From IMG/VR virus record IMGVR_UViG_3300044846_005229, positions 62,001-126,000 of that record: a stretch of 64,000 nt of DNA. The stretch is one strand, 5' to 3'. Made by a program: the position numbers and the translations under genes. Positions 1,343 to 22,190 of the stretch are shown one piece after another. Position 1 is the first letter of the stretch, and every line of letters begins with the position of its first letter. Under the pieces are notes generated by a model, which had not been told where the DNA came from, ran no database searches, and was given only the letters and a program-made list of their open reading frames with translations.

Positions 1343-1689
1343 TACTTATGCGCTGAGAATCTAGGGGTATTTCTAAGTTGGGTGCGCTTTGGCCGGGGTT
1401 TGACTATCTTTTGTTCCTCTTGTGCCACTTGTGCCACTTGTGTGTCACTAATCGGAAATTGAGTTAATTCATTTTTGTCTAACTCTGCAGTTTCCTCAGG
1501 CACTTTTGGTTTAGAGAGGGCTTTAAGAATTGGGCTTAGTTGCTTGGGGCTTACTTCCAAAATTGGTTCAGGGCTTTCGGGGGTAGCGGGGTTCCCAAGG
1601 TTCCCAAGGCCCTCAGCGCTATCGGAGGTAGCGGGGGTAGCGGGGGTTAAATCCTGAGTCTCATCCAAGTTTTTTCTTTTGGTGGTCAT
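1342..1689 (-). CDS. Hypothetical low-complexity protein
   Basis: 115-aa ORF whose stop overlaps the spike start; GGGTAAAA motif 24 nt upstream. Confidence 0.55.
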   Translation of the reverse strand: MTTKRKNLDETQDLTPATPATSDSAEGLGNLGNPATPESPEPILEVSPKQLSPILKALSKPKVPEETAELDKNELTQFPISDTQVAQVAQEEQKIVKPRPKRTQLRNTPRFSAHK

Positions 1690-1742
1690 AATAATTTGTT
1701 TGTATGATAGATTTTTACCCTGACTTTAGTGTTACCGGCCAA

Positions 1743-4637: not shown

Positions 4638-4638
4638 T

Positions 4639-5934
4639 TTATTCTACAATGATTAGATCATCAGATAGTGCTAAGTATTCTTGATTCATGCAAGTATCGG
4701 GGGTCATCCAAAGGGCCGAATAATTATCCACTTGCTCGTATAGGTTAATCAAGTTGTCATCCCATGGCCTTGTAAGCCATTCTGCAATGGGTTGGTAATC
4801 TGCATTTACAGACTCTCTGATGTCAAAAATTTTCTTTACCTCATAACTCGGGGAAATATCAACTTGAGCAAGTTTACAATAGGTGACTGGAACTTCTTCC
4901 CCCGCACTATTAATTACTATAGATGGCAGACTACCCAGTGGGTGAGCAACAAGAGATACTTCTGATTTACCCGTTGATGGTCCCCTCAGAAGGGAGATAG
5001 TCCCTGAAACAGAAACAGATTGTATGGAAATTTTGGGGTCTGACCACTCGATCTTCCAACCAGTATTAAAAGTGGGTATTGCAATTTTAAATGTAAAGAA
5101 TTGACCCGTACTATCCCTACTAACTTCCACTGTTTCCACAAAAATCCAATCCGGATCAGGGCAGTATGGGTTATCAGGGTACGGTTGCCCAGGGTTATCA
5201 GGATCTTCGTTAAAACAGTTGGTTATAGATAGGGTGGCGCTACCCGTAATTACAGTGTTAGGTGGGCAACGGAATGTTATCTCAGAAAAAGAAGCCGCCC
5301 TGGGGAATTGCCAGTATAAGTACGGCGCTCCAGAATAATATGGAAATACCCCATCGTAATTTCTCCATTCTAGGGTCGCATCATTGCAAAAAGCATATTT
5401 AGGTACGAACCTCCACCCTACCTCAGAATCTGTGCCACTGACGACATTCATTTCGTGACCAGATAAGGAATAATTCTCTACAGAATACAAAGCATAGAAG
5501 GGGGAATCGTCATAGGTCAATTTATAAGCTATCAAATATTGGGAATCAGCCATCCCAACCAATTCTAAATTTATAATGACTGGGCCTATGTAAAGATTAC
5601 CGTGCTCCCAAACTACGGTTCCAGGCTTGATGACTAAAAATTTATCGCCCCCTGATGCAACAACTTCTAGGGAATTAGGGCCAAACGGACTTTCCCCAGG
5701 CGGTAGATACACATAGGCAGACTTCCTATCTAGTCCAAAGTCAACATAGTATCGTTCCGATGCGGCAGGTAACCTACCATAAATAGGTCTACCACCTGGT
5801 ACCCATTCAGTGGGTGTCTCAAACAGGTTATTAGCCTCTTGAAACTGGACGGATAATATAGTACCAAATGTAGGATTAGAAGATGTCTGAATTTCCCCCC
5901 TACCCCCATTTAAAGGCGTGATAATCTGGCTCAT
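4639..5934 (-). CDS. Putative baseplate/tail protein
   Basis: 431-aa ORF overlapping the baseplate J stop by 4 nt. Confidence 0.5.
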   Translation of the reverse strand: MSQIITPLNGGRGEIQTSSNPTFGTILSVQFQEANNLFETPTEWVPGGRPIYGRLPAASERYYVDFGLDRKSAYVYLPPGESPFGPNSLEVVASGGDKFLVIKPGTVVWEHGNLYIGPVIINLELVGMADSQYLIAYKLTYDDSPFYALYSVENYSLSGHEMNVVSGTDSEVGWRFVPKYAFCNDATLEWRNYDGVFPYYSGAPYLYWQFPRAASFSEITFRCPPNTVITGSATLSITNCFNEDPDNPGQPYPDNPYCPDPDWIFVETVEVSRDSTGQFFTFKIAIPTFNTGWKIEWSDPKISIQSVSVSGTISLLRGPSTGKSEVSLVAHPLGSLPSIVINSAGEEVPVTYCKLAQVDISPSYEVKKIFDIRESVNADYQPIAEWLTRPWDDNLINLYEQVDNYSALWMTPDTCMNQEYLALSDDLIIVE

Positions 5935-8900
5935 AGACTTAAGGTCCCTTCTTTATAGTCAGGCGGTTGGTAGGGGAAAGTAGTCCCAGTATACCAAGAG
6001 AGTTGGGGAACATCTGTATTGGAACTAGGGTTCTCCCACACATAGGTTATTTTCTGATTAGAGTTAGAAAATCTCCCTGTATTGCGAGGTACTAGTGTTA
6101 TTTGGGCTACTCCCAATTTAATCGAGGAGGTCTCCAATCCAAATTGAGAGATAATTTCCTCTTCACACCTGTAAAAAGAGACGTACCTCAGTAGGTTATC
6201 GGCAAATTCTTCAAATCTGGCCGTATTGGTGACTGTCATGTTTGTCCAGTTGGTCACCGTTGTTTGAGGTGTGAATGCTCTCATTACTCTATAGATATTC
6301 CTGCCATCCTCTGCTACAAGGGTGTCCTCTGCGTATTTGATATACTCCGGATTAAAATATGGGATGTATGTCCGGGAGTCAAATTCGTTTGTTCCAGCTT
6401 CTGAGGAGTCTATGAAAATACCGTTTTTGTAGTAAATTGAAAAGTCAAATAAGGGGCTTACGCTAGATGTGGCTGTATAGGATCTTACCGAATTACCATT
6501 TCTAAAGTAGGTTCTGTCCCCTCTGTAGAAAGTAAACATCCTGACAAATGTATTTATTTCCGTCAGCCGGGGGTAAAGAGAGGTTATTTGGATTTGGAAG
6601 CCACTGCCGGTGCCGCCCAAGTAACTATTATCTATAGTCAGGACATCACCAATCGAGAACCCTCTTCCAAAATCAGATAACTCGTAGGAAATAATTGTAT
6701 TCCCTGAGACTACCAAGTTAATGGATCCGTTGACCCCAACCCCATTGATCGGGTTGCCATATATTAAAGGTAGGTTAGTATAGGCACCGTTTCGGTAACC
6801 TGACCCCCCGTTGACCAAGTTGGTCGTCTTTATTCTGCCAGATACGCTATTATCTACTAGGTCGTCTAATTGCGACCTTAGCTCGAATGAAGGTGCAAGG
6901 TTGATCACTGAGCCATCATTGATTAAGTCCTGAATAGATGTGCTGCTTGGTGTGAAGTACTTGGCGGCAATACAATAGGTAGGGGTCCCCCCTGAAACTT
7001 CCCTGTATTCTAAATACTGCCCACATTTGAATCTAGGTTTGTATTTGTAAATGGGTAGCCCACCATTGCCATCTAGTACGGACACTTCTTTTATAATGCC
7101 TTGCTTTATTAATTCGCTAAAGTAATCTACGGTTAGTGCCCCATTGGGTTCGTAAGTAAAAGGCGCAATTACATAGGCGTACTTATTGACAGCCCCTTTC
7201 GTTACGTCAACATAGTTATAATGGGGGTCAGAAACAGCATCCGGACCGCTCCCAACCTGTGGTGTGTAAACCCAAGTTCCTGCTAAGTAGGACTGACCTT
7301 CAACTAGTTGATTGTAATTATTTGGCAAGCTAGAATTTAAAGCTGGTCCTATTTTATTTTCAGTCTGGGACCCGGTAATGTCATTCGTAGAAGGGAATAA
7401 GATAAAATTCTGAGCTACCAGCCAAGCTAATCTTCCGACAGTAGTGGTAGGTAGGAACTCACCGTCTGAGTAGTCATACTCAACGATTTCTGGGTCTATT
7501 GTTGTCCCCAGTGAATATTGGTAAGTATTATTTACGACCCATGCAGAATAAGTCTTTGCCGAAGAAATTTTTCCAGCTACAAAGGCACTGGGGATATCTG
7601 CTGAAGATCCAATTACTATGTTTTCAAGGACTACGAATAATTGATTATTGAAGAACACAATGTCCCCCAAACTGTATCTACCGGCAGTAAGTAACTTTAT
7701 TTGCTTTAAAGCAAGATTACCGTACACAGTTTGGTCGAATTTGTTTGTTGAATAGGGGCTATACGCTTCTTCTACTGGGTAGTATAAGGGGTTAGGGTTA
7801 TTAACTACAATGAGGTCATCGCCATTTAAAATAGTATTTACGGGTTCAAAATCATATACATTAGTATAAATAGCAGCGTCTTTACTCAGAAGAACAGGAG
7901 TATTGTAAGCTGCGGAGTAGTTAATTTGAGGGTCTTTGAACCTACTGATAGAATCAAAAGTATTATAAAAAGCTGCATCAACATCACTTACGGTTGGGTT
8001 CGTGTCAGTTGGGAAAACATTTCCAGGGGTCAGTACTGTGGATAACCTATCCCTAAAATTCAAAGTTACAGGCTGATAATTAGAGCCATAGATACCATTG
8101 GCATCAACTTCAAGAGTTATGTTATATTGAGTTTGGCTTAGAGTAATAGGGTACAGGTGGGCTTGATTTTCAATGGGGATCGAGAAATTAATTACATTTT
8201 GACCCCTTCTTATTTGGTCATCTGTTAATTCTATACCATTGGGTCCAAGCACAAAGAAAGAAACTTGTCCATTGGGCTTCGTAAAGTCAGACAAATAATT
8301 ATAACCAAATCTGCTACTTCTATTGGGTTGAACAGAAGTCAGAGTCCCTAAACCAAACATATCTATGAAGAAATTCTCCCAGTCTGCCTGGCTAACGGGA
8401 TTCCTGCGTCGGATTAGGGAGAAAAATCTTTCTTGAACTTGAGCATATGTTTCTACATCACTGCCCCCTACCGCAGGTTCAGGATTGGTTACTACGGTGC
8501 TAGCTTCCCCGAGGTCTGGGGGACCAGTAATTGAATTAGCCGGGACATTATAGATGTTACCTACAAATTTAGAATAAACAGGGATTTCAACTTCGGTCTT
8601 ACCGGCAGGTATTGTGACACTATATGAGCTTACATATTCAAATCCTTGGCCGCCTGATAATTGGGGGTTGGATGTAAATACAGACCCGGATGGTACCGAT
8701 AAGTCTGAATTTCTTGGTGCTATTGACAACCTAACCAAAGCTGTAGCAGGGGTACCTAGTCTCCTTAGGGCGCCTAAAAATGGGCCTATCCATTCGATAA
8801 GGATCTTATTTGGTAGTTGATTCGCCCAAAATAAAAATTCACCTTGAGAAAAAGCCTGCCCCTCTAAAAGAACCGCAAGGGGATTCCCTGCACTGAAGTC

Positions 8901-9011
8901 ATTGAGGGTTTTGTTAGACGCCTCGTATACTTTTTGCGCTGCATCTTGAACTAATTGTGCCTCGTTCCTTGGGTCTATTGAAACCGAGGGGAGGGGAGCA
9001 TATCTTGGCAT
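5931..9011 (-). CDS. Baseplate J-like wedge protein with long C-terminal extension
   Basis: LNDFSAGNPLAVLLE, G..YNVPANSI and VTNPEPAVGGSDVET motifs typical of baseplate J/gp6 proteins. Confidence 0.8.
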   Translation of the reverse strand: MPRYAPLPSVSIDPRNEAQLVQDAAQKVYEASNKTLNDFSAGNPLAVLLEGQAFSQGEFLFWANQLPNKILIEWIGPFLGALRRLGTPATALVRLSIAPRNSDLSVPSGSVFTSNPQLSGGQGFEYVSSYSVTIPAGKTEVEIPVYSKFVGNIYNVPANSITGPPDLGEASTVVTNPEPAVGGSDVETYAQVQERFFSLIRRRNPVSQADWENFFIDMFGLGTLTSVQPNRSSRFGYNYLSDFTKPNGQVSFFVLGPNGIELTDDQIRRGQNVINFSIPIENQAHLYPITLSQTQYNITLEVDANGIYGSNYQPVTLNFRDRLSTVLTPGNVFPTDTNPTVSDVDAAFYNTFDSISRFKDPQINYSAAYNTPVLLSKDAAIYTNVYDFEPVNTILNGDDLIVVNNPNPLYYPVEEAYSPYSTNKFDQTVYGNLALKQIKLLTAGRYSLGDIVFFNNQLFVVLENIVIGSSADIPSAFVAGKISSAKTYSAWVVNNTYQYSLGTTIDPEIVEYDYSDGEFLPTTTVGRLAWLVAQNFILFPSTNDITGSQTENKIGPALNSSLPNNYNQLVEGQSYLAGTWVYTPQVGSGPDAVSDPHYNYVDVTKGAVNKYAYVIAPFTYEPNGALTVDYFSELIKQGIIKEVSVLDGNGGLPIYKYKPRFKCGQYLEYREVSGGTPTYCIAAKYFTPSSTSIQDLINDGSVINLAPSFELRSQLDDLVDNSVSGRIKTTNLVNGGSGYRNGAYTNLPLIYGNPINGVGVNGSINLVVSGNTIISYELSDFGRGFSIGDVLTIDNSYLGGTGSGFQIQITSLYPRLTEINTFVRMFTFYRGDRTYFRNGNSVRSYTATSSVSPLFDFSIYYKNGIFIDSSEAGTNEFDSRTYIPYFNPEYIKYAEDTLVAEDGRNIYRVMRAFTPQTTVTNWTNMTVTNTARFEEFADNLLRYVSFYRCEEEIISQFGLETSSIKLGVAQITLVPRNTGRFSNSNQKITYVWENPSSNTDVPQLSWYTGTTFPYQPPDYKEGTLSL

Positions 9012-9023
9012 TTAATCCTCTAA

Positions 9024-9515
9024 TCAGTATTCGCCGTTGTCAATGACTAAATTGTTTAGCAAATCGGCTAAGATTTTCTTGGTGATTAAGTCAGCATCAT
9101 CCAATGACCCGAACTTTTGAGCTACTGACGGGTTAGGTGTCCCATTAGCGTAATTATATTTATTGTTTGTCGTATAACTTCTAGGGGCATTTTCTTTGAT
9201 ATTTTCAGGGTTGACATTATTATAATTTTCATCCAACAAAGTAGGGAAACCAAACCACCATTTACCTAAGGTAACTTTATTGCCAGTGATAGGGGCTCCA
9301 GAAATGAATTCATTTAAGCTAGATAGCGTAGGCTGGTTGGTACCTAAAGTCATGTACCGACTATCCAATCCATTCGGACCAGCCGTAACCAGAGAGTTCA
9401 ATCCGAGGGGGTCATAGTGCCAATCTAAATCTTGGCCATCGAAAAATATTTGTTTTGCTCCGTTCAACCATGCACTGGTTACAATGACAGCGGAACTGTA
9501 AGTTGTCTTTGCCAT
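9024..9515 (-). CDS. Putative virion protein
   Basis: 163-aa ORF at the head of the baseplate operon; GAGG SD precedes the next gene; GGGTAAAA upstream. Confidence 0.55.
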   Translation of the reverse strand: MAKTTYSSAVIVTSAWLNGAKQIFFDGQDLDWHYDPLGLNSLVTAGPNGLDSRYMTLGTNQPTLSSLNEFISGAPITGNKVTLGKWWFGFPTLLDENYNNVNPENIKENAPRSYTTNNKYNYANGTPNPSVAQKFGSLDDADLITKKILADLLNNLVIDNGEY

Positions 9516-10069: not shown

Positions 10070-13000
10070 TCAGGACAAGATGTTGGTGATCATAGCGCCA
10101 GAACCGATAAGACCAGATGCACCGAGGCCAACCAAGTTAACCACACGTTCGATGGTGATTTCAGCACGCACGACACGGCGTTCGCGAATGTAGTACTCCA
10201 ATTTGTTATCGTAAAGGCTCTTTATCCCTTGCTTCTGCATGTTTCTATGCAGTTCAGACTATATCATCGTTTTGTAAACAAAACGTCAGGCGCTCGTGGA
10301 TTGTTCACCTGTTCTAGGCTACTTAATCTAGTCGTTGGACCTTGCTTTTATCCCTAAAAGCCTTGGCTGCTGATTGCCTTGTGTTTCAAGGAATTCACTC
10401 CTGAAACCGTCAGGTTTCCCAGCAATTCACCTAATTTCTTTTTATGTCAGACCCCAGTAGTTAAGGACGGACAGCGGGTGTTCCTGTGAGTTGATCATTT
10501 TTGTTAGCGTGAAGGTTATTTATCCTCCACTTCTTCACATTTCTGCAAAGATCAGACTATATCTTCTTCCTTGAAATTCCTTATAAACCTTTGAAGAGTT
10601 TTTGACCTAAACCCGTTTTTCTTTGTGTCCAGATTTAATAATTGACCTAAGAGTATGTCCCCAGGTTTGTTATTTTCAATCCATACTTGTCTAATCTTAT
10701 CCTTCATTCCCTCCAAGTCTTTATTAGAGTTTGGGTGAGCATAACCCCTAGGGGTATTTGAAGAATTTAATCTTGCCTTTGAGATATTCATCCGCCTCTC
10801 TGGTGTCAATGATACACCTTTTAGAGACTCGGCAATACGAAAATTATGGGATTTAGACCTGACATAGTTTTTACGGAGAAATTCGTAGATTCTCTCACCC
10901 CCGACTGAACTCATTCTGAATACTGCATACCATAGACCTTCATGGTCAAGGTACATTTTATTCAAAAGGCGGTGAAGTATAAAGTGTTGCCTCAAGGTGG
11001 GGTAGCACAGATTTTCAGGGTCCGTTTTACTTCCGCCTAGGCATTTTGGAACTATGTGGTGCTCTTCAGTTTTGTGGGACACAGGACGAGTTTTGGGGCA
11101 TTGGTAAATTATTTGCCAATACCACTTTTCCCATTTATTAAGAAAGTGACATTCAAGGAGTGGGGCGCTCGTGGATGGGTTATTATTTTCGGTATTCACC
11201 ATCTAGTCGTTGAACCTTTTGACTACAACTCTATTATAGCATAGAGTCCGAAATAGTCAACTTGGCTGCTGATTACCATAGCTTTCAAACTCTCGTTTGA
11301 AGCCGTAGGCTTCCCAGCAATTCACCCCATTGATCTGCGGATCAGGCAGATAATTTGACGTTACCGTCAAACCACGCATTCAACTCGTTTGAAAGAAACG
11401 ATGTTATTAACATACGTGTAACTGAAGGACGGAGTCGCAGCATTAGCACCACCCGCAGGCATGATCGAATCAGAAGGGCCGTTGGGGCTGTAGAACAGGA
11501 GGATGCCATTGGCGGGGAAGACAGGCTGCAAGGAGCCGTCGTTGGCCAAATAACGCCCTTCAGCTACGCGCAGGCCACGCTCAAGACCGAAGTAGCGAGC
11601 GATGACATCTGTGTCGATGCTATCGGCGGAAGTGTACTTGATACGATCAAGGATCGCTTCGTTGGTCAGCAAGAGGTCGAAAACCGAAGTTCCAAGAACA
11701 GCGGAGTTCGGACGAATGCCGATCTGGTTGGCAACAGCACGCTTCAGAGTCAGGATGTCCTCAATGGGATTAGAGGTTGCACCAGACCATGCGGCAGGGC
11801 CAGTGGCTGTGCCATAAGCGGTGTTGAAGGCGGTCCAGGTTGTAAAACCAAGACCAGTTTGTGAGCCAGGAGTCCCATTGTAGGGCTCGTATGGATTGTA
11901 GCTGCCAGTCACTGAAACAGCTTGAGCAACGGTGTACTCGTAGCTGTTCATCCATTATGTTATCGCGAGGGCTCTTTATCCCTTGCTTCTGCATGTTTCT
12001 ATGCAGTTCAGACTATATCATCGTTTTGTAAACAAAACGTCAGGCGCTCGTGTCAGCTTCATTACTGTTCTAGTAGTATGCTGTTAGTCGTTGAACGTTC
12101 CGTCAATCCCTTGACGGCTTCGCTGCTGATTACCATAGCTTTCAAACTCTCGTTTGAAGCCGTAGGCTTCCCAGCAATTCACCCAATTTTCTAAATGAGA
12201 TCAATCTCATAGGGCCAATGTGTTTAGCCTAGACATCGCATTGCGAGTCTCGACGGCGCGTAGCATTTGTTAACTCAGCGGCTCTTTATCCACTGATTCA
12301 TTACCTTGTCGTTGGTAATGTTCAGACTATATTATTGCCCCACTATGTACACGATTACTGTACTTTGTAAGACATTGGGCGCTCGTGTCAGCTTCATTAC
12401 TGTTCTAGTAGTATGCTGTTAGTCGTTGAACGTTCGTTTTCTCCCGAAAACGCTTCGCTGCTGATTGCCCACGCGGGGGTTCCAGCAATTCACCCAATTT
12501 AGAGTGGACCTACGCTGCGATCGAAATCGTTCGTAAAAAATAATCCACTTGTGCAGGACCTTCTCCTGCGTTCTCGATTCAATAATGTTATCGCAAAGGC
12601 TCTTTATCCTTTACTTCTCTCTGTTTCCAGAAAGTTCAGACTATATCTTCACCCTTATCAGGGTGCTGGGCGCTCGTGTCAGCTTCATTACTGTTCTAGT
12701 AGTATGCTGTTAGTCGTTGGACCTTGCTTTTATCCCTAAAAGCCTTGGCTGCTGATTACCATAGCATCAAACTTTCGTTTGAAGCCGTAGGCTTCCCAGC
12801 AATTCACCCAGTTTTTCTATCAGTTTTTCAACTGACGGAGGCTATCGATCTAACCTCTTCCAAGGTTGTTATCACAAAGGCTCTTTATCCTTTGCTTCTG
12901 TAAATTTACCATCTTTACAGTTCAGACTATATCACCACCCATTTTTGAATGATATCCAATCTAAGTCTTTTGAAGGTACCCAACCTTGCTCAAATTTACG

Positions 13001-15850
13001 AACCATGCGGGACACAGAAGTTGATCTTCTTACTCCCACTAAAGTTGATAGCTTTACTCCACCACATCTATGGTGAAGCCACACATTATAAATTTGATCG
13101 GCGATCATCCAAAGATTTTTGGCTTGTCTACTTGTGGATGTAGCCGTGTTTCTATATGGGGGTATATTATAACCGTGCTTAGAAACAATACTCTTTCCTA
13201 AATTAGGGAGCTTTGTGTAAGCTTTAACTAAATGAGGATGCTTAGTGTTATTCAAAAACCTAGTTATACTTCTAGCTATAAACGGGGTCATTTCCATTTT
13301 ACCTAATAAAAGATGTAGAATGTAATGTTCCCTCGGAGTTAAAGTAACTTTCCAGTGTCGATCTATATGCTCCCAGTTTTTGGGAAATAAGCATTCTGGG
13401 ATGACGTGGTGTTCTTCTACTGAGCCTTTAAGATAGCTAGACCCGTTGGTCCTTCTTTTTTCGACTTTTTGGATTATACTCCAATACCACTTCTCATATT
13501 TACTTGAATAGTGGCAAGTTAGGTGTTGGGCGCTCGTGGATGGGTTATTATTTTCGGTATTCACCATCTAGTCGTTGAACCTTTTGACTACATTCCCATT
13601 ATAGCATGGGAACCGAAATAGTCAACTTGGCTGCTGATTGGCCATTAAGTTGGAGGCTTTCCAGCAATTCACCCTATTATTCTTACCGCGCTAACTAGGC
13701 AACGGCAAGGCCCAAAGATTTAGGCAATTCCCATGCGACCACTTCCTGCTCCAGAGCATAGGGCTCGGAGTCGTAACGGCTTTGGACGTAGGGGATGTTT
13801 GTCATTTGTTAACGCAAAGGCTCTTTATCCCTTGCTTCTACATGTTTCCATGTAGGTCAGACTATATCTTTGCCTTACATTACCATGTAGGGCATTGGGC
13901 GCTCGTGGATTGTTCACCTGTTCTAGGCTACTTAATCTAGTCGTTGAACCTTGCTTTTATCCCTAAAAGCCTTGGCTGCTGATTACCATAGCTTTCAAAC
14001 TCTCGTTTGAAGCCGTAGGCTTCCCAGCAATTCACCCAATTTATTTACGGCACAAACTAATTACCGTAAGCACGACGGAAGTCGTTGATAGCAACACCAT
14101 GTTATCGTAGAGACTCTTTATTCCCTACCTCTGCATGTTTCTATGCAGTTCAGACTATATCATCGTTTTGTAAACAAAACGTCGGGCGCTCGTGGATTTT
14201 TCACCTGTTCTAGGCTACTTAATCTAGTCGTTGAACCTTGCTTTTATCCCTAAAAGCCTTGGCTGCTGATTTCCCTCGCCTTTACGTTAGGGGTTCCCAG
14301 CAATTCACCCAATTTTACAACAGCAAGCTATTTACTGTTCCTTCAATTATGTTATCGCAGGGGCTCTTTATCCCTTGCTTCTGCATGTTTCTATGCAGTT
14401 CAGACTATATCATCGTTTTGTAAACAAAACGTCAGGCGCTCGTGGAGTTTTCATCTGTTCTAGATTACTAACTCTAGTCGTTGAACCTTGCTTTTATCCC
14501 TAAAAGCCTTGGCTGCTGATTACCATAGCATCAAACTTTCGTTTGAAGCCGTAGGCTTCCCAGCAATTCACCCAATTTTTCATAACCCCTCACGGAGTTA
14601 AGCGGCATATGGAATACCGAAGCGCAGGATACGTCCTGCACGAGTTGGAGTGTCTACCACCGGTGCTATGAATAATATACAAAACTTAACGTTTTGCTCT
14701 GCATGTTTCCATGCAGTTTAGACTATATCATCATCTTTGCCTAAGCAAAGAGTCGGGCGCTCGTGGAAAGATTATTCTTGGGTCAGTCACTTTCTAGTCG
14801 TTGAACCTTCTTACTTCACTCTTATTATAGCAACAAGAGACCCGAAGTAAACTTGGCTGCTGATTGCCTCTTTTGCATAGCAAAAGTAAGGTATCCCAGC
14901 AGTTCACCCGATTATTCGACAGGGGTCACCCCCTGAAGGAACCTCATTGATTCGCAATGTTGGTAGACGGTAGCATGAAACCTTGCGCGAGGGTGGTGAG
15001 ACATTTGTTAACGTAGAGGCTCTTTATCCCCTACCTCTCTTTGTTTCCAAAGAGTTCAGACTATATCATCGTTTTGTAAACAAAACGCCCGGCGCTCGTG
15101 GATTTTTCACCTGTTCTAGGCTACTTAATCTAGTCGTTGAACGTTCCGTCAATCCCTTGACGGCTTCGCTGCTGATTACCATAGCATCAAACTTTCGTTT
15201 GAAACCGTAGGCTTCCCAGCAATTCACCGGATTTTCTTTGTTAAAAACAAAGCCACTCCTTTAAATGGGCAATATGTTATCGCAAAGGCTCTTTATCCTT
15301 CACTTCTTTACATTTCTGCAAAGGTCAGACTATATCATCATCCTTTAACTCCCATGCTGAGGAGTCAAGGAGCTGGGCGCTCGTGGAGTTTTCATCTGTT
15401 CTAGATTACTAACTCTAGTCGTTGGACCTTGCTTTTATCCCTAAAAGCCTTGGCTGCTGATTGCCTCTTTTGCATAGCAAAAGTAAGGTGTCCCAGCAGT
15501 TCACCCAGTTTTCTGCCATCATTAAAATGACAGGGACCCTAATTAATCCACACCTGCGTAGGTCTGTTGTAGCATTATGTTATCGTAAAGGCTCTTTATC
15601 CTTCACTTCTTTACATTTCTGCAAAGATCAGACTATATCATCAACTTGCAAGCAAGTTGTCGGGCGCTCGTGGATTGTTCACCTGTTCTAGGCTACTTAA
15701 TCTAGTCGTTGAACGTTCGTTTTCTCCCGAAAACGCTTCGCTGCTGATTACCATAGCATCAAACTTTCGTTTGAAACCGTAGGCTTCCCAGCAATTCACC
15801 CGATTTTCATCCCAAGGTTACCCTTGAGCGGAACCGCCATGATTCATCAT
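10070..15850 (-). CDS. Major capsid protein (lambda gpE-like), spliced from 14 exons: 15850-15842, 15572-15546, 15269-15265, 15001-14950, 14672-14616, 14343-14334, 14094-14063, 13802-13722, 12860-12853, 12579-12543, 12263-12226, 11952-11414, 10495-10464, 10198-10070
   Basis: Joined exons total 1056 nt in one open frame, 351 aa: MMNLQQTYAGVDPILTTLAQGFMLPSTNIANFIAPVVDTPTRAGRILRFGKEQFAINDFRRAYGTNIPYVQSRYDSEPYALEQEVVAWELPEEVIENAGEGPAQVDLRAVETRNAMSRLMNSYEY...PSFSYTYQLTGTPAVRPEYYIRERRVVRAEITIERVVNLVGLGASGLIGSGAMITNILS*. The DP.LT..A.G, FGKE.F, W....SNPIEDI and PSF.YTY motifs and the position after portal-protease-decoration fit a gpE-type capsid. Confidence 0.9.
10199..10463 (-). ncRNA. Group I intron 13 of MCP (265 nt)
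   Basis: P/Q/R/S core; P1 UCCU/GGGG; terminal G. Confidence 0.9.
10552..11202 (-). CDS. Intron-encoded HNH homing endonuclease with NUMOD3-like DNA-binding motif
   Basis: EEHHIVPKCLGGS...PENL...RQHFILHRLL; RIAESLKG...RMNISKA; the last codons (DIV*) are the intron S element. Confidence 0.82.
   Translation of the reverse strand: MVNTENNNPSTSAPLLECHFLNKWEKWYWQIIYQCPKTRPVSHKTEEHHIVPKCLGGSKTDPENLCYPTLRQHFILHRLLNKMYLDHEGLWYAVFRMSSVGGERIYEFLRKNYVRSKSHNFRIAESLKGVSLTPERRMNISKARLNSSNTPRGYAHPNSNKDLEGMKDKIRQVWIENNKPGDILLGQLLNLDTKKNGFRSKTLQRFIRNFKEEDIV
11233..11260 (-). promoter_or_regulatory. Sigma70-like promoter inside intron 12 P6 region
   Basis: TTGACT-16nt-TATAAT with extended -10 TG, about 30 nt upstream of the HNH ATG. 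Confidence 0.65.
11953..12225 (-). ncRNA. Group I intron 11 of MCP (273 nt)
   Basis: P/Q/R/S core; P1 GGCU/GGCC; terminal G. Confidence 0.9.
12264..12542 (-). ncRNA. Group I intron 10 of MCP (279 nt)
   Basis: P/Q/R/S core; P1 GUGGAU/GUCCAC; P10 GCGUAG/CUACGC; terminal G. Confidence 0.92.
12580..12852 (-). ncRNA. Group I intron 9 of MCP (273 nt)
   Basis: P/Q/R/S core; P1 GAGGU/GCCUC; P10 UCGAU/AUCGA; terminal G. Confidence 0.9.
12932..13567 (-). CDS. Intron-encoded HNH homing endonuclease
   Basis: EEHHVIPECL...LTPREHYILHLLL HNH-type motif; lies inside intron 8. Confidence 0.8.
   Translation of the reverse strand: MVNTENNNPSTSAQHLTCHYSSKYEKWYWSIIQKVEKRRTNGSSYLKGSVEEHHVIPECLFPKNWEHIDRHWKVTLTPREHYILHLLLGKMEMTPFIARSITRFLNNTKHPHLVKAYTKLPNLGKSIVSKHGYNIPPYRNTATSTSRQAKNLWMIADQIYNVWLHHRCGGVKLSTLVGVRRSTSVSRMVRKFEQGWVPSKDLDWISFKNGW
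13598..13625 (-). promoter_or_regulatory. Sigma70-like promoter inside intron 8 P6 region
   Basis: TTGACT-16nt-TATAAT with extended -10 TG, about 30 nt upstream of the HNH ATG. Confidence 0.65.
13803..14062 (-). ncRNA. Group I intron 7 of MCP (260 nt)
   Basis: P/Q/R/S core; P1 UUACGGU/GCCGUAA; P10 GUUUGU/ACAAAC; terminal G. Confidence 0.92.
14095..14333 (-). ncRNA. Group I intron 6 of MCP (239 nt)
   Basis: P/Q/R/S core; P1 ACAGU/GCUGU; P10 AUAGC/GCUAU; terminal G. Confidence 0.9.
14344..14615 (-). ncRNA. Group I intron 5 of MCP (272 nt)
   Basis: P/Q/R/S core; P1 CGGU/GCCG; terminal G. Confidence 0.9.
14673..14949 (-). ncRNA. Group I intron 4 of MCP (277 nt; terminal A)
   Basis: P/Q/R/S core; P1 GAAU/GUUC; P10 AUGAG pairs with the 3' exon UUCAU; last base is A. 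Confidence 0.85.
15002..15264 (-). ncRNA. Group I intron 3 of MCP (263 nt)
   Basis: P/Q/R/S core; follows the 5-nt exon CCCAT; P1 CCAU/GUGG; terminal G. Confidence 0.88.
15270..15545 (-). ncRNA. Group I intron 2 of MCP (276 nt)
   Basis: P/Q/R/S core; P1 GGAU/GUCC; terminal G. Confidence 0.9.
15573..15841 (-). ncRNA. Group I intron 1 of MCP (269 nt, no ORF)
   Basis: P GGTGAATTGCTGGGAA, Q AATCAGCAG, R GTTCAACGACTA, S ATGATATAGTC; exon ends in U with a P1 U.G pair; terminal G. Confidence 0.9.
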
Positions 15851-17799: not shown

Positions 17800-20370
17800 T
17801 CAGTTAGAAGTCCAAAGGCAAGTTTTGATGGCTTCCAAATAGTCGGAGGCTTCACCGCGTTTTACCATTTCAAGGGCTCTTTCATGGGGATCCATGTTTT
17901 CTAAGGTTGCTTCAAATGCTTTGTCTTCTGGTCCAACAATTTCCCCAAAATGCACCATGCTTGGCAGGCGATTTAAAATTCCAAAAAGTTTGGATGTTGG
18001 TGTTTCACCTTCAGAGAATTCCAAGGTCCCAAATTCTAAACCTTCGCAGAAACTTTGCAGTTCATCTTGCTGAATGATAGCATTGGTCAGTTTGCCGTCG
18101 CTATAAAGGTTCTCAACGTAGTGGGAAATCCTTTGTTTATGGGCATGAACTTTCTGCTCTTCGAATTCCTTCTTGAGCCTATCGTTTTCTTGCTTAAGGG
18201 CTTCGATCTCCCTGTAGATTTGGGCGGGGAACCCAGTCGGGCGGGCTTGACCTGCAGAACCCATTCCGCTATACTTAACTTCTTCTTCCCCGTCAGAACA
18301 AGCTCCCATGGAACCCTTGGGCTCCTTATAAGTCGAACCCTTGCCTGTTACAGTCATTGGGTCTTCCTCCTCCGCTGCCTTTTTACGGCGGGACATTTCA
18401 CCTTCAGCATGGTTGACGGATGCCTTCTCACCGGACTTCTGACGAACAACCCGGACCTTATCACTTTGGGTAGCATCCTTTAGGTCAACTGCCATGTCGA
18501 GATCATCCGGATCTTCCTCAGAGCGAGTTGGGAAATCAGTCGGGCCACCCTCGCGGCCACGGGGGGCTTTACCACTGGAAGTCTTGGCGGATTTCGGTTC
18601 TCGGACGACCCCCTCTTCATCAGGCTCACCACCTTCGGCATGGTCGGCAATTGGGCCACCTTTGAGTGGGGCTCTTTTGTCGCTAGATGATTGGTGAATG
18701 ACGCGAGAAGTTTTGTTACCTTTAACTGATTTGACATCTACTGCCATGTCGAGATTGTCGGGGTCTTCCTCAGAAAGGTTAGAAACTGGGGTAGGCCCTT
18801 CGCTGCGGCCATGGGGATCCTTCCCATCGGAAGTTCCAGGGCGTTGCTTCTCTGGGTACTTGGTGCTGGCATCGTCATACTGATCGTTGTTTCTATCTTT
18901 GGCCATAGTGTCTTGACCGGCCCAACGACCTTCCTGACTATTGTCACCATCTTCCTCTCTAGCAGTCTTGAGACGGTCCTCGTCTTGTTCGCTATTTTTT
19001 GCAGTCTTGAGACGGTCCTCGTCTTGTTCACCATCGCTGGTTACACCCTCGCGGTCTTCCTCTGGGGCTTTACCAGCCTTTTGACGGGCACCGTAGCTAT
19101 CATCTTTAGATCGGGCAGTAACTGAACGGCCAGTAACTTTATCTCCGGTTTCACCTTTGCGGGTACCAAAGGATACTTTCCCATTAGATGCGGTTTTGTG
19201 ACTAACTTCGTCGTACTCTAGTTCATTGTACTCTGAATCCTCGTCATCCATTTCCTCTTCGTCCATGTCCGCTTCGTCAACAGGTTGACTGGGGGCTTTC
19301 TTTTTCTTGGACTTGGAAACTTCCTTATGCTGAGAATCGATACCTTCCTCAAATACTTGCTCAACAACCTGAACTTCCTGGCCACCAGCCCCTTTAGAGA
19401 CACGGCGCTTAATGCCTTCTTCGAATTCGGTGTCTTGGCGCTCCGTCTCATCCTCAGGGGAGTCCATCATTCTGGACTTTTTGCCACATTCGGTAACTTC
19501 CTTGAATTCCCCGTCTTCTTCGGTATCATCAAGTTTGGCTTCGGGGGAAACTTTTGATTTGGACATTTTTGGCTTGTTTTCTGGTGCTTTGGTTTCTAGA
19601 TTGGCTACTTCTTGAGTAGACTCAGTGATTTCAGCGCCTTCGCGCCCCAAGTTCTTTTTCATTTCAGAGAATTGCTGATTAGGGTTATCGGGGTTGGCGT
19701 TTTGATCCGCCGAATTTGTGGTTTCAGGTTGTTGGCCTTGGCCGACATCTGGTTCTGTTTGTTGGTCCTGGTTTTGTTCTAGTTGCTGTAGGGACTGATT
19801 GACTTCACTTTTGACTTCATCTAGTCTTTCTTTTAGCATTTCTAGGGGACTTTTTTCTATAAGCAGCGTCGGTCCTAAGTCCTTATCAAAAATTTGGTCA
19901 GGGGACAAGGCTACTGCAAAGTCGAAAACTCCCTCTTCTTCGCTGAAAGAGAATGGCTCCAAGCCTTTCACAGCTGGGGGTGCAGCTCCGAGTAATGCCA
20001 AATGCCTTGCACTCCACTTGCCTTTGTGTGGGTTAATGGGGGAATCGGGGGAATAGAAGGAAATGGAAACTTTCCTATAATGACCACCTCTAACTAAGTC
20101 CTTAGCTACATCCGTAAATTCTACATCTGCATATAAGTCATCACCCTTTTGAGAGAATCCTTTAATCCACCCGTAAGCAGGTACGCTGTCGTTATCTCCA
20201 GAGTGGCCAATTACAAGGGGGGCTGAATGGACTTTGGGGTCATATGAGTTTGCAACTTCCTTAAGGTCGTCAGCAGAGAAGTTTCTCTGCACACCCTGTG
20301 CGCTAGTTTGGGGGCCAGCTTTAAATACGTGGACTTTTTTTGAGAACACTTTTTTATCGGATTTACTCAT
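17800..20370 (-). CDS. Mu-like prohead protease/scaffold with long acidic insertion
   Basis: VFKAG, APLVIGH, PAYGWI, YRKVSISFY and RHLALLGAAPPAVKGL motifs; C-terminal coiled coil and LPSMVHFGE. Confidence 0.85.
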   Translation of the reverse strand: MSKSDKKVFSKKVHVFKAGPQTSAQGVQRNFSADDLKEVANSYDPKVHSAPLVIGHSGDNDSVPAYGWIKGFSQKGDDLYADVEFTDVAKDLVRGGHYRKVSISFYSPDSPINPHKGKWSARHLALLGAAPPAVKGLEPFSFSEEEGVFDFAVALSPDQIFDKDLGPTLLIEKSPLEMLKERLDEVKSEVNQSLQQLEQNQDQQTEPDVGQGQQPETTNSADQNANPDNPNQQFSEMKKNLGREGAEITESTQEVANLETKAPENKPKMSKSKVSPEAKLDDTEEDGEFKEVTECGKKSRMMDSPEDETERQDTEFEEGIKRRVSKGAGGQEVQVVEQVFEEGIDSQHKEVSKSKKKKAPSQPVDEADMDEEEMDDEDSEYNELEYDEVSHKTASNGKVSFGTRKGETGDKVTGRSVTARSKDDSYGARQKAGKAPEEDREGVTSDGEQDEDRLKTAKNSEQDEDRLKTAREEDGDNSQEGRWAGQDTMAKDRNNDQYDDASTKYPEKQRPGTSDGKDPHGRSEGPTPVSNLSEEDPDNLDMAVDVKSVKGNKTSRVIHQSSSDKRAPLKGGPIADHAEGGEPDEEGVVREPKSAKTSSGKAPRGREGGPTDFPTRSEEDPDDLDMAVDLKDATQSDKVRVVRQKSGEKASVNHAEGEMSRRKKAAEEEDPMTVTGKGSTYKEPKGSMGACSDGEEEVKYSGMGSAGQARPTGFPAQIYREIEALKQENDRLKKEFEEQKVHAHKQRISHYVENLYSDGKLTNAIIQQDELQSFCEGLEFGTLEFSEGETPTSKLFGILNRLPSMVHFGEIVGPEDKAFEATLENMDPHERALEMVKRGEASDYLEAIKTCLWTSN
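18962..19029. repeat. 29-nt direct repeat (EQDEDRLKTA x2) in protease/scaffold
   Basis: gcagtcttgagacggtcctcgtcttgttc at 18962 and 19001. Confidence 0.85.
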
Positions 20371-20372
20371 GC

Positions 20373-22190
20373 TTATTTTTTACCCTTGACCTTGTTTTCC
20401 ATCTCTGATATTATAGAGTCTAATTCTCCATCGGAAATTCCACTTGTGGATTCGGCCTCATTTGACCCTTCCTCGGGGAGTTCCCCCGGTTCGGATTCCC
20501 CTGGTTCTTCAGCCAATGCAGAGTCTAAATCGGATAGTAAGGAGTCTAACTCTTTGTTGGCTTTGCTATTTTTCTTTTTTGGTTGCTTTTCTACAGGGGG
20601 TTGCTTTGTTGGAGTTTCTTCATTCGGAGTCGTCTCATCCGGGGTCTCTTCAGTTGGGGTCATCTCAACCGGAGCCTCTTCATCCAGGGTTTCTTCAGTC
20701 GGGGTCGTATCATCCGGGGTTTCTTCACCCTGAATTCCCTCATCCGGGGCCCCTTCATCTGGGGCCACCTCGTCCGGAGTCATCTCAGCCGGACCCCCTT
20801 CAGTAGGGGGAACCTCTGGGACTTCGCCCTCAGTGGTAGATCCTGGGACCCCTTCAGCATCCCCACCCGAACCATCATCAGGGCCAAAAATTGACTCATA
20901 TAGGTTCTTATCCTTTTCAGGGTCAAACGTAGTTTCACCTTCGCTACCCTGTTGGCCCTCAGCAGATTTAGCCTCATCTTCCAGATCAACTCTAAAGTGT
21001 CTCTCAATCCATTCTCTACGGGGTTTGAAACCATTTTGAATCAATAGGGAAACATCAGCGGGTGTCAGTTGGGACTCCTCAATTCTGAACTCCCTAGTTA
21101 AAGTCGGAGATGCAACATCAGCACCGAAATTTAAATCTACAATCCACCTTACCAAAGTTTGAGTTAGTTGATGACAGATCATTTCTGATATCTCAGATGC
21201 CCTCACCACTCGAACTACGTTGGCAACCATTGACGAAGCCCTGGAACCAGACTCAGCCTGCCCAGCTTCATTTTCACCGCAAATCAGAAGGCTAATGACT
21301 TTATCTAGGTAGTCAATCAAGCCTTTAAATACATCGGGGCTACCTTCAGGGTTTATAAAATCCAATACGAACCCTTCAGGTAAAACCATCGCGGTCTCTT
21401 GGGATAAATTTGAGATCATCCCATAAATATTATCGATTTCGGCTGTTGATGCACTTAGGGGGGCAGTTGCTACGGTAGTCGGGGTTGCATATCTATCACC
21501 ATAGAGAACATAAGACTCTAATGCCCTCCTCCTAAACTTCACCAGGGGGTATAAAATACGACCAATCGAAGAACCATAGGGATCCCCATTATGCTGAGTC
21601 CAGTACCTATTGATGATGAATTTACGCGCAGGTAGCTCGATACCTTCAAACATCCTGTTGAATGTCAAGCAACGCATTGTAAAACCTGTTTGAGAATCCT
21701 CAGCTTCTTGGAAGACAAATCGGCGCTGGTCTCTAACTCGAACATCAAATGGGATGACACCCCGCTTGGTTTTTTTCCACATTACTTCCGCAACACTGAA
21801 ACCAACGATTAAGGCTTCGGCTAAGCCTTTGAAAATATCGTCTATTGGCAACTCTTCTAAAACTTCAGCTACAAAGTCCCTGACGGCTAAGTCTCCGGGT
21901 TTATCGCTGTATTCCTGAATATACCATGGCCTAGACGTAACTTCCTGGAGCAACTTAGAGTAAGAACCCTGGACTTGTTCATCCAATAGCAACCTTTGGT
22001 AAGTTGATAATGCGCGATTACCCCCCTTTTGGATTAGTAGATCGTCATTAGGGCGAACAATGCTGGAACCAGTCCCCGTAAAAGGAGAGCTGGAACCAAA
22101 CATGTAAATAGAACTAAGCGCATACGGGTTACTGATGTACGAGCTTATTTCACCGGTTGGGACAGGCGAGGTCTTAAATCTTTTGGCCAT
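20373..22190 (-). CDS. Portal protein (DUF935 / Mu gp29-like) with acidic tail
   Basis: GFSVAEVMW, DPYGSSIGRILY, DRYATP, ISLLICG, SRAS and TLVRWIVDLNFG motifs. Confidence 0.88.
   Translation of the reverse strand: MAKRFKTSPVPTGEISSYISNPYALSSIYMFGSSSPFTGTGSSIVRPNDDLLIQKGGNRALSTYQRLLLDEQVQGSYSKLLQEVTSRPWYIQEYSDKPGDLAVRDFVAEVLEELPIDDIFKGLAEALIVGFSVAEVMWKKTKRGVIPFDVRVRDQRRFVFQEAEDSQTGFTMRCLTFNRMFEGIELPARKFIINRYWTQHNGDPYGSSIGRILYPLVKFRRRALESYVLYGDRYATPTTVATAPLSASTAEIDNIYGMISNLSQETAMVLPEGFVLDFINPEGSPDVFKGLIDYLDKVISLLICGENEAGQAESGSRASSMVANVVRVVRASEISEMICHQLTQTLVRWIVDLNFGADVASPTLTREFRIEESQLTPADVSLLIQNGFKPRREWIERHFRVDLEDEAKSAEGQQGSEGETTFDPEKDKNLYESIFGPDDGSGGDAEGVPGSTTEGEVPEVPPTEGGPAEMTPDEVAPDEGAPDEGIQGEETPDDTTPTEETLDEEAPVEMTPTEETPDETTPNEETPTKQPPVEKQPKKKNSKANKELDSLLSDLDSALAEEPGESEPGELPEEGSNEAESTSGISDGELDSIISEMENKVKGKK

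Follow-up and report, generated by a model that had tools for sequence, protein, structure and literature searches.

Group I introns of the phage type are present in the td, nrdB and sunY genes of phage T4. They have core elements in common, and recombination at short conserved core sequences is reported to create hybrid introns by domain shuffling (Bryk and Belfort, Nature 1990). Several group I introns in one phage gene, some of them with HNH-type endonuclease ORFs, have been described for orf142 of Staphylococcus phage Twort, which contains three introns and shows exon skipping (Landthaler and Shub 1999, cited in PMC11878797), and for Bastillevirinae (PMC11878797). The Jug jumbo gut phages are uncultured large phages rich in small group I introns, whose splicing is supported by metatranscriptome reads (PMC12880540). 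In phage PhiPA3, an intron in an essential gene carries a homing endonuclease that is used in competition between co-infecting phages (PMC11620839). Outside phages, fungal mitochondrial cox1 genes contain many group I introns with endonuclease ORFs, whose presence varies between strains.

The locus described here resembles these systems in its phage-type core, its intron-encoded ORFs and its mosaic introns, but has 13 introns in a single capsid gene with 1,056 coding bases, which is far denser than any phage gene described in the papers found, and the array looks like natural ribozyme domain shuffling. It was analysed in a window of 64,000 nt (positions 62,001 to 126,000 of IMG/VR record IMGVR_UViG_3300044846_005229), and all coordinates refer to this window. 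An earlier note, based on the sequence alone, had described the introns between 10199 and 15841 as combinatorial mosaics of interchangeable peripheral modules. This observation was confirmed and extended. The interpretation given with it, ongoing gene conversion between independently assorting modules together with a possibly selected alternation of the P5 module, was supported only in part. Literature searches on capsid-gene introns in cyanophages, phage S-CBWM1, micro-exons and intron domain shuffling found nothing on this gene.

Organization of the capsid gene

The gene is located on the minus strand at 10070..15850 and comprises 14 exons (1,056 nt with the stop codon) and 13 group I introns. 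Splicing in silico yielded an open frame of 351 aa that is 68% identical over its full length to the intronless major capsid protein of Synechococcus phage S-CBWM1, with no gap at any junction. Rfam RF00028 matched 13 times on the minus strand between 10235 and 15911. Twelve matches scored 57–101.6 bits (gathering score 50), whereas intron 8 scored 46 bits because of its 596-nt ORF insert but contains all five core blocks. The positions 10199 and 15841 are exactly the 3' end of intron 13 and the 5' start of intron 1. A megablast search of the region against deposited phage genomes returned only core matches of 62–125 nt, showing that the genome is not in that collection.

Exon boundaries were derived from the in silico splicing and from a contig lacking all introns (L005), which aligned to the predicted spliced CDS without gaps over 1,056 nt. 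L005 is 100% identical to an 11-intron genome (L006) everywhere except the introns. In addition, two lake metatranscriptome contigs (X19 and X20) carry every exon joint, including those of the 5-, 8- and 10-nt exons. In X20, the joints have a depth of about 106–152, against 0–47 over introns. These RNA contigs are 95–99% like the window and thus come from a related strain, and a co-occurring intronless strain could in principle supply the joined form.

Exon 1 (15842..15850, 9 nt, ATGATGAAT) is followed by intron 1 (15573..15841, 269 nt, 98 bits), which carries P5a, a P6 of the GCGUUUUC type and a P7.1 of the GAUUAAG type and is spanned by the RNA joint 15571>15841. Exon 2 (15546..15572, 27 nt) precedes intron 2 (15270..15545, 276 nt, 82.6 bits), with P5b, the common P6 and a P7.1 of the GAGUUAG type. 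Exon 3 (15265..15269) has only 5 nt (CCCAT) and is present as ATGGG on the plus strand between the two sides of the RNA joint 15001>15546. Intron 3 (15002..15264, 263 nt, 89.6 bits) and exon 4 (14950..15001, 52 nt) follow. Intron 4 (14673..14949, 277 nt, 93.7 bits) has a divergent 3' domain and ends in A, whereas the other 12 introns end in the usual G. Its junction, AAT|TTC, is fixed unambiguously by L005 and by the RNA joint 14672>14950, and the same end is kept in the related contigs L006, L007 and L035. Alternative splice sites that would give a canonical terminal G were rejected, because they change the frame or the conserved NFIAP peptide and contradict both the intronless contig and the RNA joint.

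Exon 5 (14616..14672, 57 nt) is followed by intron 5 (14344..14615, 272 nt, 88.1 bits) and by exon 6 (14334..14343, 10 nt, AAGGAACAGT), whose letters ACTGTTCCT lie between the sides of the RNA joint 14094>14615. Intron 6 (14095..14333, 239 nt, 89.7 bits), exon 7 (14063..14094, 32 nt), intron 7 (13803..14062, 260 nt, 93.6 bits; RNA joint 13801>14062) and exon 8 (13722..13802, 81 nt) precede intron 8 (12861..13721, 861 nt), which has a long P6 and an ORF in place of P8. Exon 9 (12853..12860) has 8 nt (GAAGAGGT), and its letters ACCTCTTC lie between the sides of the RNA joint 12579>13722. It is followed by intron 9 (12580..12852, 273 nt, 101.6 bits), exon 10 (12543..12579, 37 nt), intron 10 (12264..12542, 279 nt, 57.7 bits; RNA joint 12263>12543), exon 11 (12226..12263, 38 nt) and intron 11 (11953..12225, 273 nt, 85.7 bits; RNA joint 11950>12224). 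Exon 12 (11414..11952, 539 nt) is the only exon long enough for a gene caller to find and matches Pfam Phage_cap_E. The 3' part of the gene consists of intron 12 (10496..11413, 918 nt, 57 bits), again with a long P6 and an ORF in place of P8, exon 13 (10464..10495, 32 nt), intron 13 (10199..10463, 265 nt, 80.6 bits) and exon 14 (10070..10198, 129 nt including the stop codon).

The ORF of intron 8 (12932..13567, minus strand, 211 aa) starts inside the P7.1 hairpin and reads through the P3' core, and that of intron 12 (10552..11202, minus strand, 216 aa) has the same first 13 residues. Both are homing endonuclease-like, matching PHROG 655 (homing endonuclease) with E=6e-21 and E=5e-30, respectively. 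The intron-12 ORF also gave a weak match to the HNH family PHROG 12434 (E=9e-4), an EEHH(I/V) motif is visible, and a Pfam search of both ORFs returned no family at E<=0.01.

Mosaic structure of the introns

Five core blocks (GGTGAAYTGCTGG, AATCAGCAGC, AACGACTA, ACGAGCGCC and ATATAGTCT) are identical in all 13 introns, apart from one C/T position in introns 2 and 4. A consensus fold, obtained with a method that does not predict the P7 pseudoknot, recovered P3, P4, the base of P5, P6, P8, P9 and P9.1, with compensatory changes in 29 of 47 pairs, and the P7 strands GACUA and UAGUC are complementary in every copy. The helix names used in the earlier note are therefore appropriate. With no subgroup-specific model at hand, the features bearing on subgroup IA2 are limited to one hairpin between P7 5' and P3' and to best DNA matches among Bacillus and Staphylococcus phage introns.

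The P1/P2 segments are unique to each intron (distance 0.31–0.72), as the note had claimed. All 13 upstream exons end in U, and each pairs over 4–7 bp with a G-initiated guide in its own intron, with a U.G pair at the splice site. A simple scan for the specificity of this pairing was not discriminating and does not show that an intron's own exon pairs better than the others, because the guides are only 4–7 bp long and the scan ran into the core.

By contrast, the P5, P6, P7.1, P8 and P9 hairpins fall into discrete alleles, with bimodal distances of 0–0.1 within an allele and 0.2–0.7 between alleles. The note had assigned three P6 strings to introns 2, 5, 6, 7, 9 and 13, to 3 and 11, and to 1 and 10, two P5 strings to introns 1, 3, 5, 7, 9, 11 and 12 and to 2 and 4, three P7.1 strings to introns 1, 3, 6, 7 and 13, to 9, 10 and 11, and to 2 and 5, and a P8 string to introns 3, 5, 6, 11 and 13. 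Each was found exactly in the introns named, except that the common P5 pattern requires a 1-nt indel to cover introns 7, 11 and 12, giving three subvariants. The chance expectation was 0.00 matches in 100 shuffles, against 6 and 3 exact copies found. The alleles are hairpins of the same shape, such as three P6 stems that are all capped by GGGA.

All 13 introns have different combinations of the five modules. Most pairs of modules are formally compatible with one tree, because many alleles occur only once, but the partitions of P6 and P7.1 (2 cycles) and of P7.1 and P9 (1 cycle) are mutually incompatible. The PHI test gave P=0.0015, and 60–63% of informative site pairs are incompatible. The claim that modules assort independently is only partly true. 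Introns 8 and 12 (and loosely intron 4) form a linked subfamily with a long P6, their own P7.1 and a homing endonuclease-like ORF, P8 and P9 are correlated (Mantel r=0.45), and P5 is mostly stable at its site. In Mantel tests, most module pairs were uncorrelated, and the significant ones were driven mainly by the subfamily of introns 4, 8 and 12.

The note had also proposed that the common P5 module, which does sit in introns 1, 3, 5, 7, 9, 11 and 12, may alternate because of selection against mis-pairing between neighbours. This idea is not supported. The alternation has P=0.025–0.027 before correction for five modules and is absent from a sister clade, where one P5 allele sits at the adjacent sites 1, 2, 3 and 4. 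Pooled over modules, neighbours are neither less nor more alike than random and allele sharing shows no dependence on position, and adjacent introns do not share shorter identical tracts than random (P=0.57).

Related phage genomes have introns at the same sites. In five genomes whose exon 12 is 97.8–100% identical, introns at the same site keep the same P1-P2 and 3' tail but differ by whole hairpins that match alleles at other sites. The fraction of same-site pairs sharing an allele is 0.92 for P1P2, 0.84 for P5, 0.79 for P9, 0.72 for P8, 0.55 for P7.1 and 0.39 for P6. Exchange appears to have continued while closely related strains diverged. The note had proposed the P/Q/R/S cores as crossover points. 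The differences start and stop at the invariant blocks, which correspond to P, Q, R, P3' and S, so that breakpoints lie in or beyond those cores, although they cannot be placed more finely.

Origin of the mosaic

Recombination among paralogous introns is the best explanation of these data and is considered likely. In this view, the region is the major capsid protein gene of an uncultured lake-water tailed phage, one assembly of which is a 279-kb contig, and a single family of phage-type (IA2-like) group I introns has colonised the gene 13 times. Each intron would be cut out precisely by means of its own guide, giving an mRNA with an intact capsid gene despite exons of only 5–10 nt. Any allele would work in any copy, because the catalytic core (P3, P4, P7 and joining strands) is shared, while the peripheral hairpins form a small set of alleles with the same length and the same loops, for example GGGA on P6 and the UAGAACAG motif in three of the five P7.1 forms, but with different compensatory stems. 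Homologous recombination between non-allelic introns, mostly non-reciprocal conversion, would start in the invariant core blocks or in neighbouring modules that happen to be shared and move hairpins from one intron to another, whereas selection would remove any event that touches the site-specific ends (P1-P2 and the 3' tail) or deletes an exon. This would explain why the central hairpins P6 and P7.1 are the most mobile. However, several core blocks have only 8–13 nt, which is short for homologous recombination unless a neighbouring module is shared.

The analysis itself demonstrates the introns and their boundaries, the spliced form in RNA libraries, the mosaic pattern with its phylogenetic incompatibility, and the whole-hairpin differences between same-site introns of related genomes. 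The recombination mechanism, its operation within one genome or between co-infecting genomes, any role of double-strand breaks made by the two putative intron-encoded endonucleases, and self-splicing as such are inferred.

Chimeric assembly, which the note had named as a possible refutation, is largely answered and appears very unlikely; in that case the introns would be real, but short-read assemblers would have taken wrong paths through the shared cores and produced chimeric module combinations. The region is a tandem array of similar repeats, Logan k=31 contigs break at every shared module, and many related contigs end inside the gene. All DNA evidence is from short-read metagenome assemblies and k=31 contigs, the latter confirming the unique parts at 100% identity but unable to link modules over distance, and no single molecule spanning several introns was seen. 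Nevertheless, the full 13-intron haplotype is reproduced in two IMG data sets (contigs L002 and L003 equal the window over 16,537 nt with 0 mismatches), and a third contig covering introns 11–13 (L004) has 1 mismatch in 4,949 nt. A second haplotype (L007) is reproduced at 100% identity by L083 and L133 from other data sets. Data sets that agree may come from the same lake population, making them independent assemblies but perhaps not independent populations. The longest exact tract shared by two window introns is 90 nt, which a read of the usual ~150 nt (Illumina) would bridge. Convergent compensatory evolution of identical hairpins is effectively refuted: although the stems are under structural selection and compensatory changes are common, identical strings of 26–39 nt occur in up to 6 copies, and allele distances show no intermediates.

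It is also unlikely that there was no exchange within the gene and each intron arrived separately from a diverse outside pool, already carrying its module combination, with the mosaic reflecting recombination elsewhere in the phage intron pool. The same core pattern does occur in at least 120 IMG/VR stretches, mostly as single copies in unrelated contigs, it is 82–83% identical over about 125 nt to an intron region in Bacillus phage DNA polymerase genes and 86–89% identical over 62–86 nt to Staphylococcus phage introns, and some alleles of relatives (n1, n3) are absent from the window. However, identical P1-P2 segments and tails with differences only in internal hairpins fit conversion of a resident intron rather than replacement by a newcomer, and in the examples examined the swapped-in alleles are present at other sites of the same gene. 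A somewhat less remote possibility, though still doubtful, is that transfer between sites was rare and ancient and that ordinary allelic recombination between co-infecting phages now reshuffles long-standing polymorphisms. Flanking genes of the compared genomes differ by 3–5%, which leaves time for allelic recombination, and the same few alleles recur at a given site. Yet this scenario still needs non-allelic exchange to create the polymorphisms, and P6 shows up to four alleles at one site among five genomes, with module mobility rising with distance from the site-specific ends, as expected for repeated internal conversion.

A more far-reaching reading, which is speculative and rather improbable on present evidence, is that the capsid gene acts as a breeding ground for one ribozyme family, whose introns multiply to new sites inside the gene (at least 16 sites across the family, up to 14 insertions in one genome) and evolve as a recombining population with continually reshuffled hairpins. 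The array may then be kept because it is useful, for example by making the gene immune to the homing endonucleases of competing phages or by acting as a barrier to recombination with them. This reading would include a natural intron, intron 4, that appears to splice with a terminal A instead of the near-universal G.

Comparison with known systems

In the papers that could be found, the phage maximum is three group I introns in one gene (PMC11878797), whereas 11 of the 13 introns described here lie within the first 356 coding bases. This raises the known limit of how densely such introns, predicted to be self-splicing, can be packed and still yield a very highly expressed structural protein. 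Exons of 5–10 nt flanked by near-identical ribozymes are a natural test of co-transcriptional folding and of how exon skipping is avoided, which has so far been studied only with engineered tandem introns (PMC10136302). The allele sets are a ready-made natural library showing which peripheral helices of one ribozyme core can be exchanged, and the variation between strains gives a way to measure non-allelic recombination in wild phage populations. Since gene callers see only a 179–194-aa fragment of this capsid gene, such genes are probably being missed or mis-annotated in viral metagenomes.

The Twort and Bastillevirinae introns have a core similar to the one described here, which is 82–83% identical over about 125 nt to the intron region of the Bacillus phage SageFayge DNA polymerase, but those genes hold at most two or three introns, mainly in DNA-metabolism genes and terminase, in contrast to 13 in a capsid gene here and up to 14 insertions in the relative L051. 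The Jug phages have about 18.5 introns spread over a whole 360–400 kb genome, with genes split into two or three pieces, and there is no report there of one family packed into one gene or of module exchange. The PhiPA3 system involves a single intron, but offers a possible selective reason for keeping introns 8 and 12. Fungal cox1 introns belong to diverse subgroups, are mostly over 1 kb with ORFs and are not known to be near-identical paralogues sharing one core or to be separated by exons of 5–10 nt. In T4, finally, the three introns sit in three different genes and the hybrids were reportedly rare laboratory events, whereas here 13 copies sit in one 1-kb gene and the mosaics are the standing natural state, varying between strains.

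Gene structure and exon junctions

The region was searched with the Rfam group I intron model, which matched 13 times on the minus strand between positions 10235 and 15911. Twelve matches scored 57-101.6 bits against a threshold of 50, whereas the 13th scored 46 bits because it carries a long ORF. No other part of the 64-kb window gave such a match, no tRNAs were detected, and all large ORFs run on the minus strand. The neighbouring genes are typical of a phage head and tail module and include those for the portal (20373-22190), the head maturation protease (17800-20370) and a baseplate wedge protein (5931-9011). The portal and protease genes and the DNA polymerase gene further along (29239-32184), which are usual intron targets in other phages, are uninterrupted. 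Within this window, the intron family is confined to the capsid gene. The only long exon (11414-11952) matched Pfam Phage_cap_E, and its closest annotated relative is the intronless 342-aa major capsid protein of Synechococcus phage S-CBWM1.

To define the gene structure, the S-CBWM1 protein was mapped onto the region, and the P1 pairings and conserved 3' tails were read from the sequence, which fixed 13 pairs of splice sites. The spliced gene comprises 1,056 nt and encodes 351 aa that are 68% identical to the S-CBWM1 protein from first to last residue, with no gap at any junction. The exons are 9, 27, 5, 52, 57, 10, 32, 81, 8, 37, 38, 539, 32 and 129 nt long, and eleven introns are located in the first 356 coding bases. 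The interval 10199-15841, to which the earlier note referred, corresponds exactly to the outer ends of introns 13 and 1.

The boundaries were verified with an intronless IMG/VR contig (L005; IMGVR_UViG_3300012770_000549), which aligned to the predicted spliced coding sequence over all 1,056 nt without gaps and with 97.6% identity. Compared with L006 (positions 486-9212), a related genome with 11 introns in this gene, L005 was 100% identical in 4,186 nt upstream, in every exon and in 1,213 nt downstream, and differed only by lacking the introns; its last 92 nt repeat part of exon 12. Since the precise loss of 11 introns with no other change is unlikely at the DNA level, L005 is best read, by inference from its sequence alone, as an assembled spliced polycistronic transcript filed as a viral contig. 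Contigs from two lake metatranscriptomes (X19 and X20) carried every predicted joint. Introns 1, 4, 7, 10 and 11 were skipped singly, whereas introns 2 and 3 were skipped together with ATGGG (exon 3 on the plus strand) between the two sides, introns 5 and 6 with ACTGTTCCT (exon 6), introns 8 and 9 with ACCTCTTC (exon 9), and introns 12 and 13 with exon 13 between. These contigs are 95-99% like the window and thus come from a related strain, and their exon-12 variant pattern fits both L006 and L005. In X20, the joined forms had a depth of about 106-152 (49 for the joint across introns 12 and 13), against 0-47 over introns. One contig of intron sequence ended exactly at the last base of intron 11.

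Intron 4 (14673-14949, minus strand) ends in A (..GUUUUGUAUAUUA|UUCAUAG; 3' end at 14673) instead of the near-universal terminal G. This junction is fixed without ambiguity by the intronless contig and the RNA joints, and the same end is conserved in L006 and in the related genomes L007 and L035. In most other lineages, the intron at this site ends ..GGUAACAAGUG with a G. The P7 strands, which hold the G-binding pocket, are unchanged.

Mosaic composition of the introns

Every module string reported in the earlier note was present exactly in the introns named, against a chance expectation of zero, and the observation of combinatorial modules is confirmed. Each intron was cut at five invariant blocks, GGTGAAYTGCTGG, AATCAGCAGC, AACGACTA, ACGAGCGCC and ATATAGTCT, which together correspond to P3/P4, P4', P7, P3' and P7' (the classical P, Q, R and S elements plus P3'). 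The intervening hairpins fall into discrete alleles. For P5, one common allele is found in introns 1, 3, 5, 7, 9, 11 and 12 (in three 1-3-nt subvariants) and a second in introns 2 and 4, in addition to four unique forms. P6 comprises three 29-nt alleles (introns 2, 5, 6, 7, 9 and 13; introns 3 and 11; introns 1 and 10) and a 53-nt form in introns 4, 8 and 12. P7.1 has five forms (introns 1, 3, 6, 7 and 13; introns 2 and 5; introns 9, 10 and 11; introns 8 and 12; intron 4). P8 has one allele in introns 3, 5, 6, 11 and 13 and six unique forms, with ORFs in introns 8 and 12. P9 has one allele in introns 5, 6, 11 and 13, another in introns 1, 2 and 12, and six unique forms, of which those of introns 3 and 9 are similar. 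Distances between hairpins were bimodal (0-0.1 or 0.2-0.7).

A consensus fold confirmed the helix names, with compensatory changes in 29 of 47 pairs. The alleles have the same shape: the three short P6 alleles are 7-bp stems capped by the same GGGA loop, and three P7.1 alleles share one two-stem layout and the UAGAACAG motif, which gives a structural reason why they can be exchanged. In the 3' part, twelve introns share a P9.1 hairpin with a conserved AUAAAGAG loop (AUAAAUAA in intron 12) and a GAUAACA-type tail. The two strands of the P9.1 stem vary in a compensatory way between introns. P9.1 represents a further variable module that was not listed in the earlier note.

Introns 8 and 12 contain homing-endonuclease-like ORFs (PHROG 655) at 12932-13567 and 10552-11202 (both minus strand), respectively. 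Both start inside the P7.1 hairpin and read through the P3' core, and their first 13 residues (MVNTENNNPSTSA) are identical because ribozyme structure encodes them. The stop codon of the intron-8 ORF overlaps the strand leading into P7'.

The introns are mosaics in the phylogenetic sense. All 13 have different five-module combinations, and neither the P6 and P7.1 partitions nor the P7.1 and P9 partitions can both fit one tree. At the nucleotide level, 60-63% of informative site pairs were incompatible. The PHI test gave P=0.0015 for 11 or 10 ORF-less introns, weakening to 0.066 when introns 4 and 10 were both left out. The independent assortment proposed in the earlier note holds only in part, as introns 8 and 12 (and loosely intron 4) form a linked subfamily with a long P6, their own P7.1 and an endonuclease ORF, and P8 and P9 are correlated.

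Related genomes and the origin of the mosaic

A scan of IMG/VR with the long exon returned 80 related loci. The number of introns in this gene ranges from 0 to 13, or 14 insertions in the relative L051 when two that lack the full core signature are counted. Mapping of the insertions onto the coding sequence gave the 13 sites of the window (after nt 9, 36, 41, 93, 150, 160, 192, 273, 281, 318, 356, 895 and 927). Relatives carry introns or insertions at sites that are empty in the window: at nt 303 (L006, at ~7125-7395, L051, L011-L013, L017, L020, L025, L032, L039, L066 and L072), at nt ~74 (L013, L015, L019 and others) and at nt ~880-888 (L038 and L051). These include one splitting exon 10 and a 215-nt insert near nt 74 that lacks the full core signature. 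Many relatives at 77-83% identity have no introns.

The window was then compared with L006, L007, L035 and L051, whose exon 12 is 97.8-100% identical. Introns at the same site keep identical P1-P2 segments and 3' tails, with only 0-4 point differences elsewhere, whereas whole hairpins are replaced by alleles found at other sites. The fraction of same-site pairs sharing an allele was 0.92 for P1-P2 (0.00 for different-site pairs), 0.84 for P5 (0.23), 0.79 for P9 (0.07-0.08), 0.72 for P8 (0.10-0.11), 0.55 for P7.1 (0.17-0.18) and 0.39 for P6 (0.18-0.20). The most central hairpins are the most mobile, as expected if conversion tracts are tolerated only when they avoid the site-specific ends. Differences begin and end at the invariant blocks.

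Chimeric assembly, which the earlier note had named as a possibility to be excluded, is unlikely to have created this pattern. Two contigs from different IMG data sets, L002 (279 kb) and L003 (110 kb), equal the window over 16,537 nt with no mismatch, and a third, L004, has one mismatch in 4,949 nt. A different mosaic haplotype, that of L007, is reproduced at 100% identity by the contigs L083 (2,160 nt) and L133 (5,978 nt) from other data sets. This agreement is between assemblies rather than single molecules, and the public runs were examined as k=31 contigs, which break at every shared module. The DNA contigs of a 2024 lake run matched all unique parts with no differences. In addition, the longest exact tract shared by any two introns of the window is 90 nt and would be bridged by Illumina reads if these had the usual length of ~150 nt. 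A contig from a 2016 freshwater DNA run (X10) joins position 14851 to 15449, and hence the 5' part of intron 2 to the 3' part of intron 4, through their shared P5 module. It is either another module combination at site 2 or a recombinant that has lost exons 3 and 4 (57 nt, in frame).

The interpretation put forward in the earlier note, ongoing intron-to-intron gene conversion with an alternation of P5 modules that may reflect selection against mis-pairing, is partly supported. The intron boundaries, the joined forms in the RNA libraries, the mosaic pattern and the hairpin differences between same-site introns were read directly from the sequences, whereas the mechanism is inferred. The best reading is homologous, mostly non-reciprocal recombination between non-allelic introns, which would start in the invariant cores or in neighbouring shared modules, with selection removing events that touch the guide sequences or delete exons. 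Donor and recipient may lie in one genome or in co-infecting genomes. Some alleles in relatives (n1 and n3) are absent from the window, so the pool extends beyond a single genome. The two putative endonucleases could, hypothetically, supply the breaks. The core type is widespread, occurring in at least 120 IMG/VR stretches, mostly as single copies, and once, as the Q-R-P3' core pattern, in a contig labelled as a giant-virus metagenome-assembled genome (L144; IMGVR_UViG_GVMAG-S-1101176-83_000001). It is 82-83% identical over about 125 nt to the intron region of the Bacillus phage SageFayge DNA polymerase. The identity of the cores therefore reflects functional constraint at least as much as homogenisation.

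The presence of the common P5 module in every odd intron from 1 to 11 is real in the window but statistically weak (P=0.025 exact and 0.027 by permutation, before correction for five modules). P5 is stable at its site, so close relatives simply inherit the pattern, and in the 91%-identity clade one P5 allele occupies the adjacent sites 1, 2, 3 and 4. Adjacent introns do not share shorter identical tracts than random (P=0.57), and pooled allele sharing shows no neighbour effect. The proposed selection against mis-pairing between neighbours is not supported.

Comparison with other phage introns

Literature searches returned nothing on this gene or its relatives. In the papers found, the phage maximum is three introns per gene, in Twort orf142 and in Bastillevirinae DNA polymerase and terminase genes (PMC11878797). 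Jug phages have about 18.5 introns per 360-400-kb genome, with genes split into two or three pieces (PMC12880540). Domain shuffling between T4 introns has reportedly been obtained in the laboratory (Bryk and Belfort 1990). Both the kind of element and the kind of process are known, whereas the density, the micro-exons and the standing natural module exchange within one gene are new.
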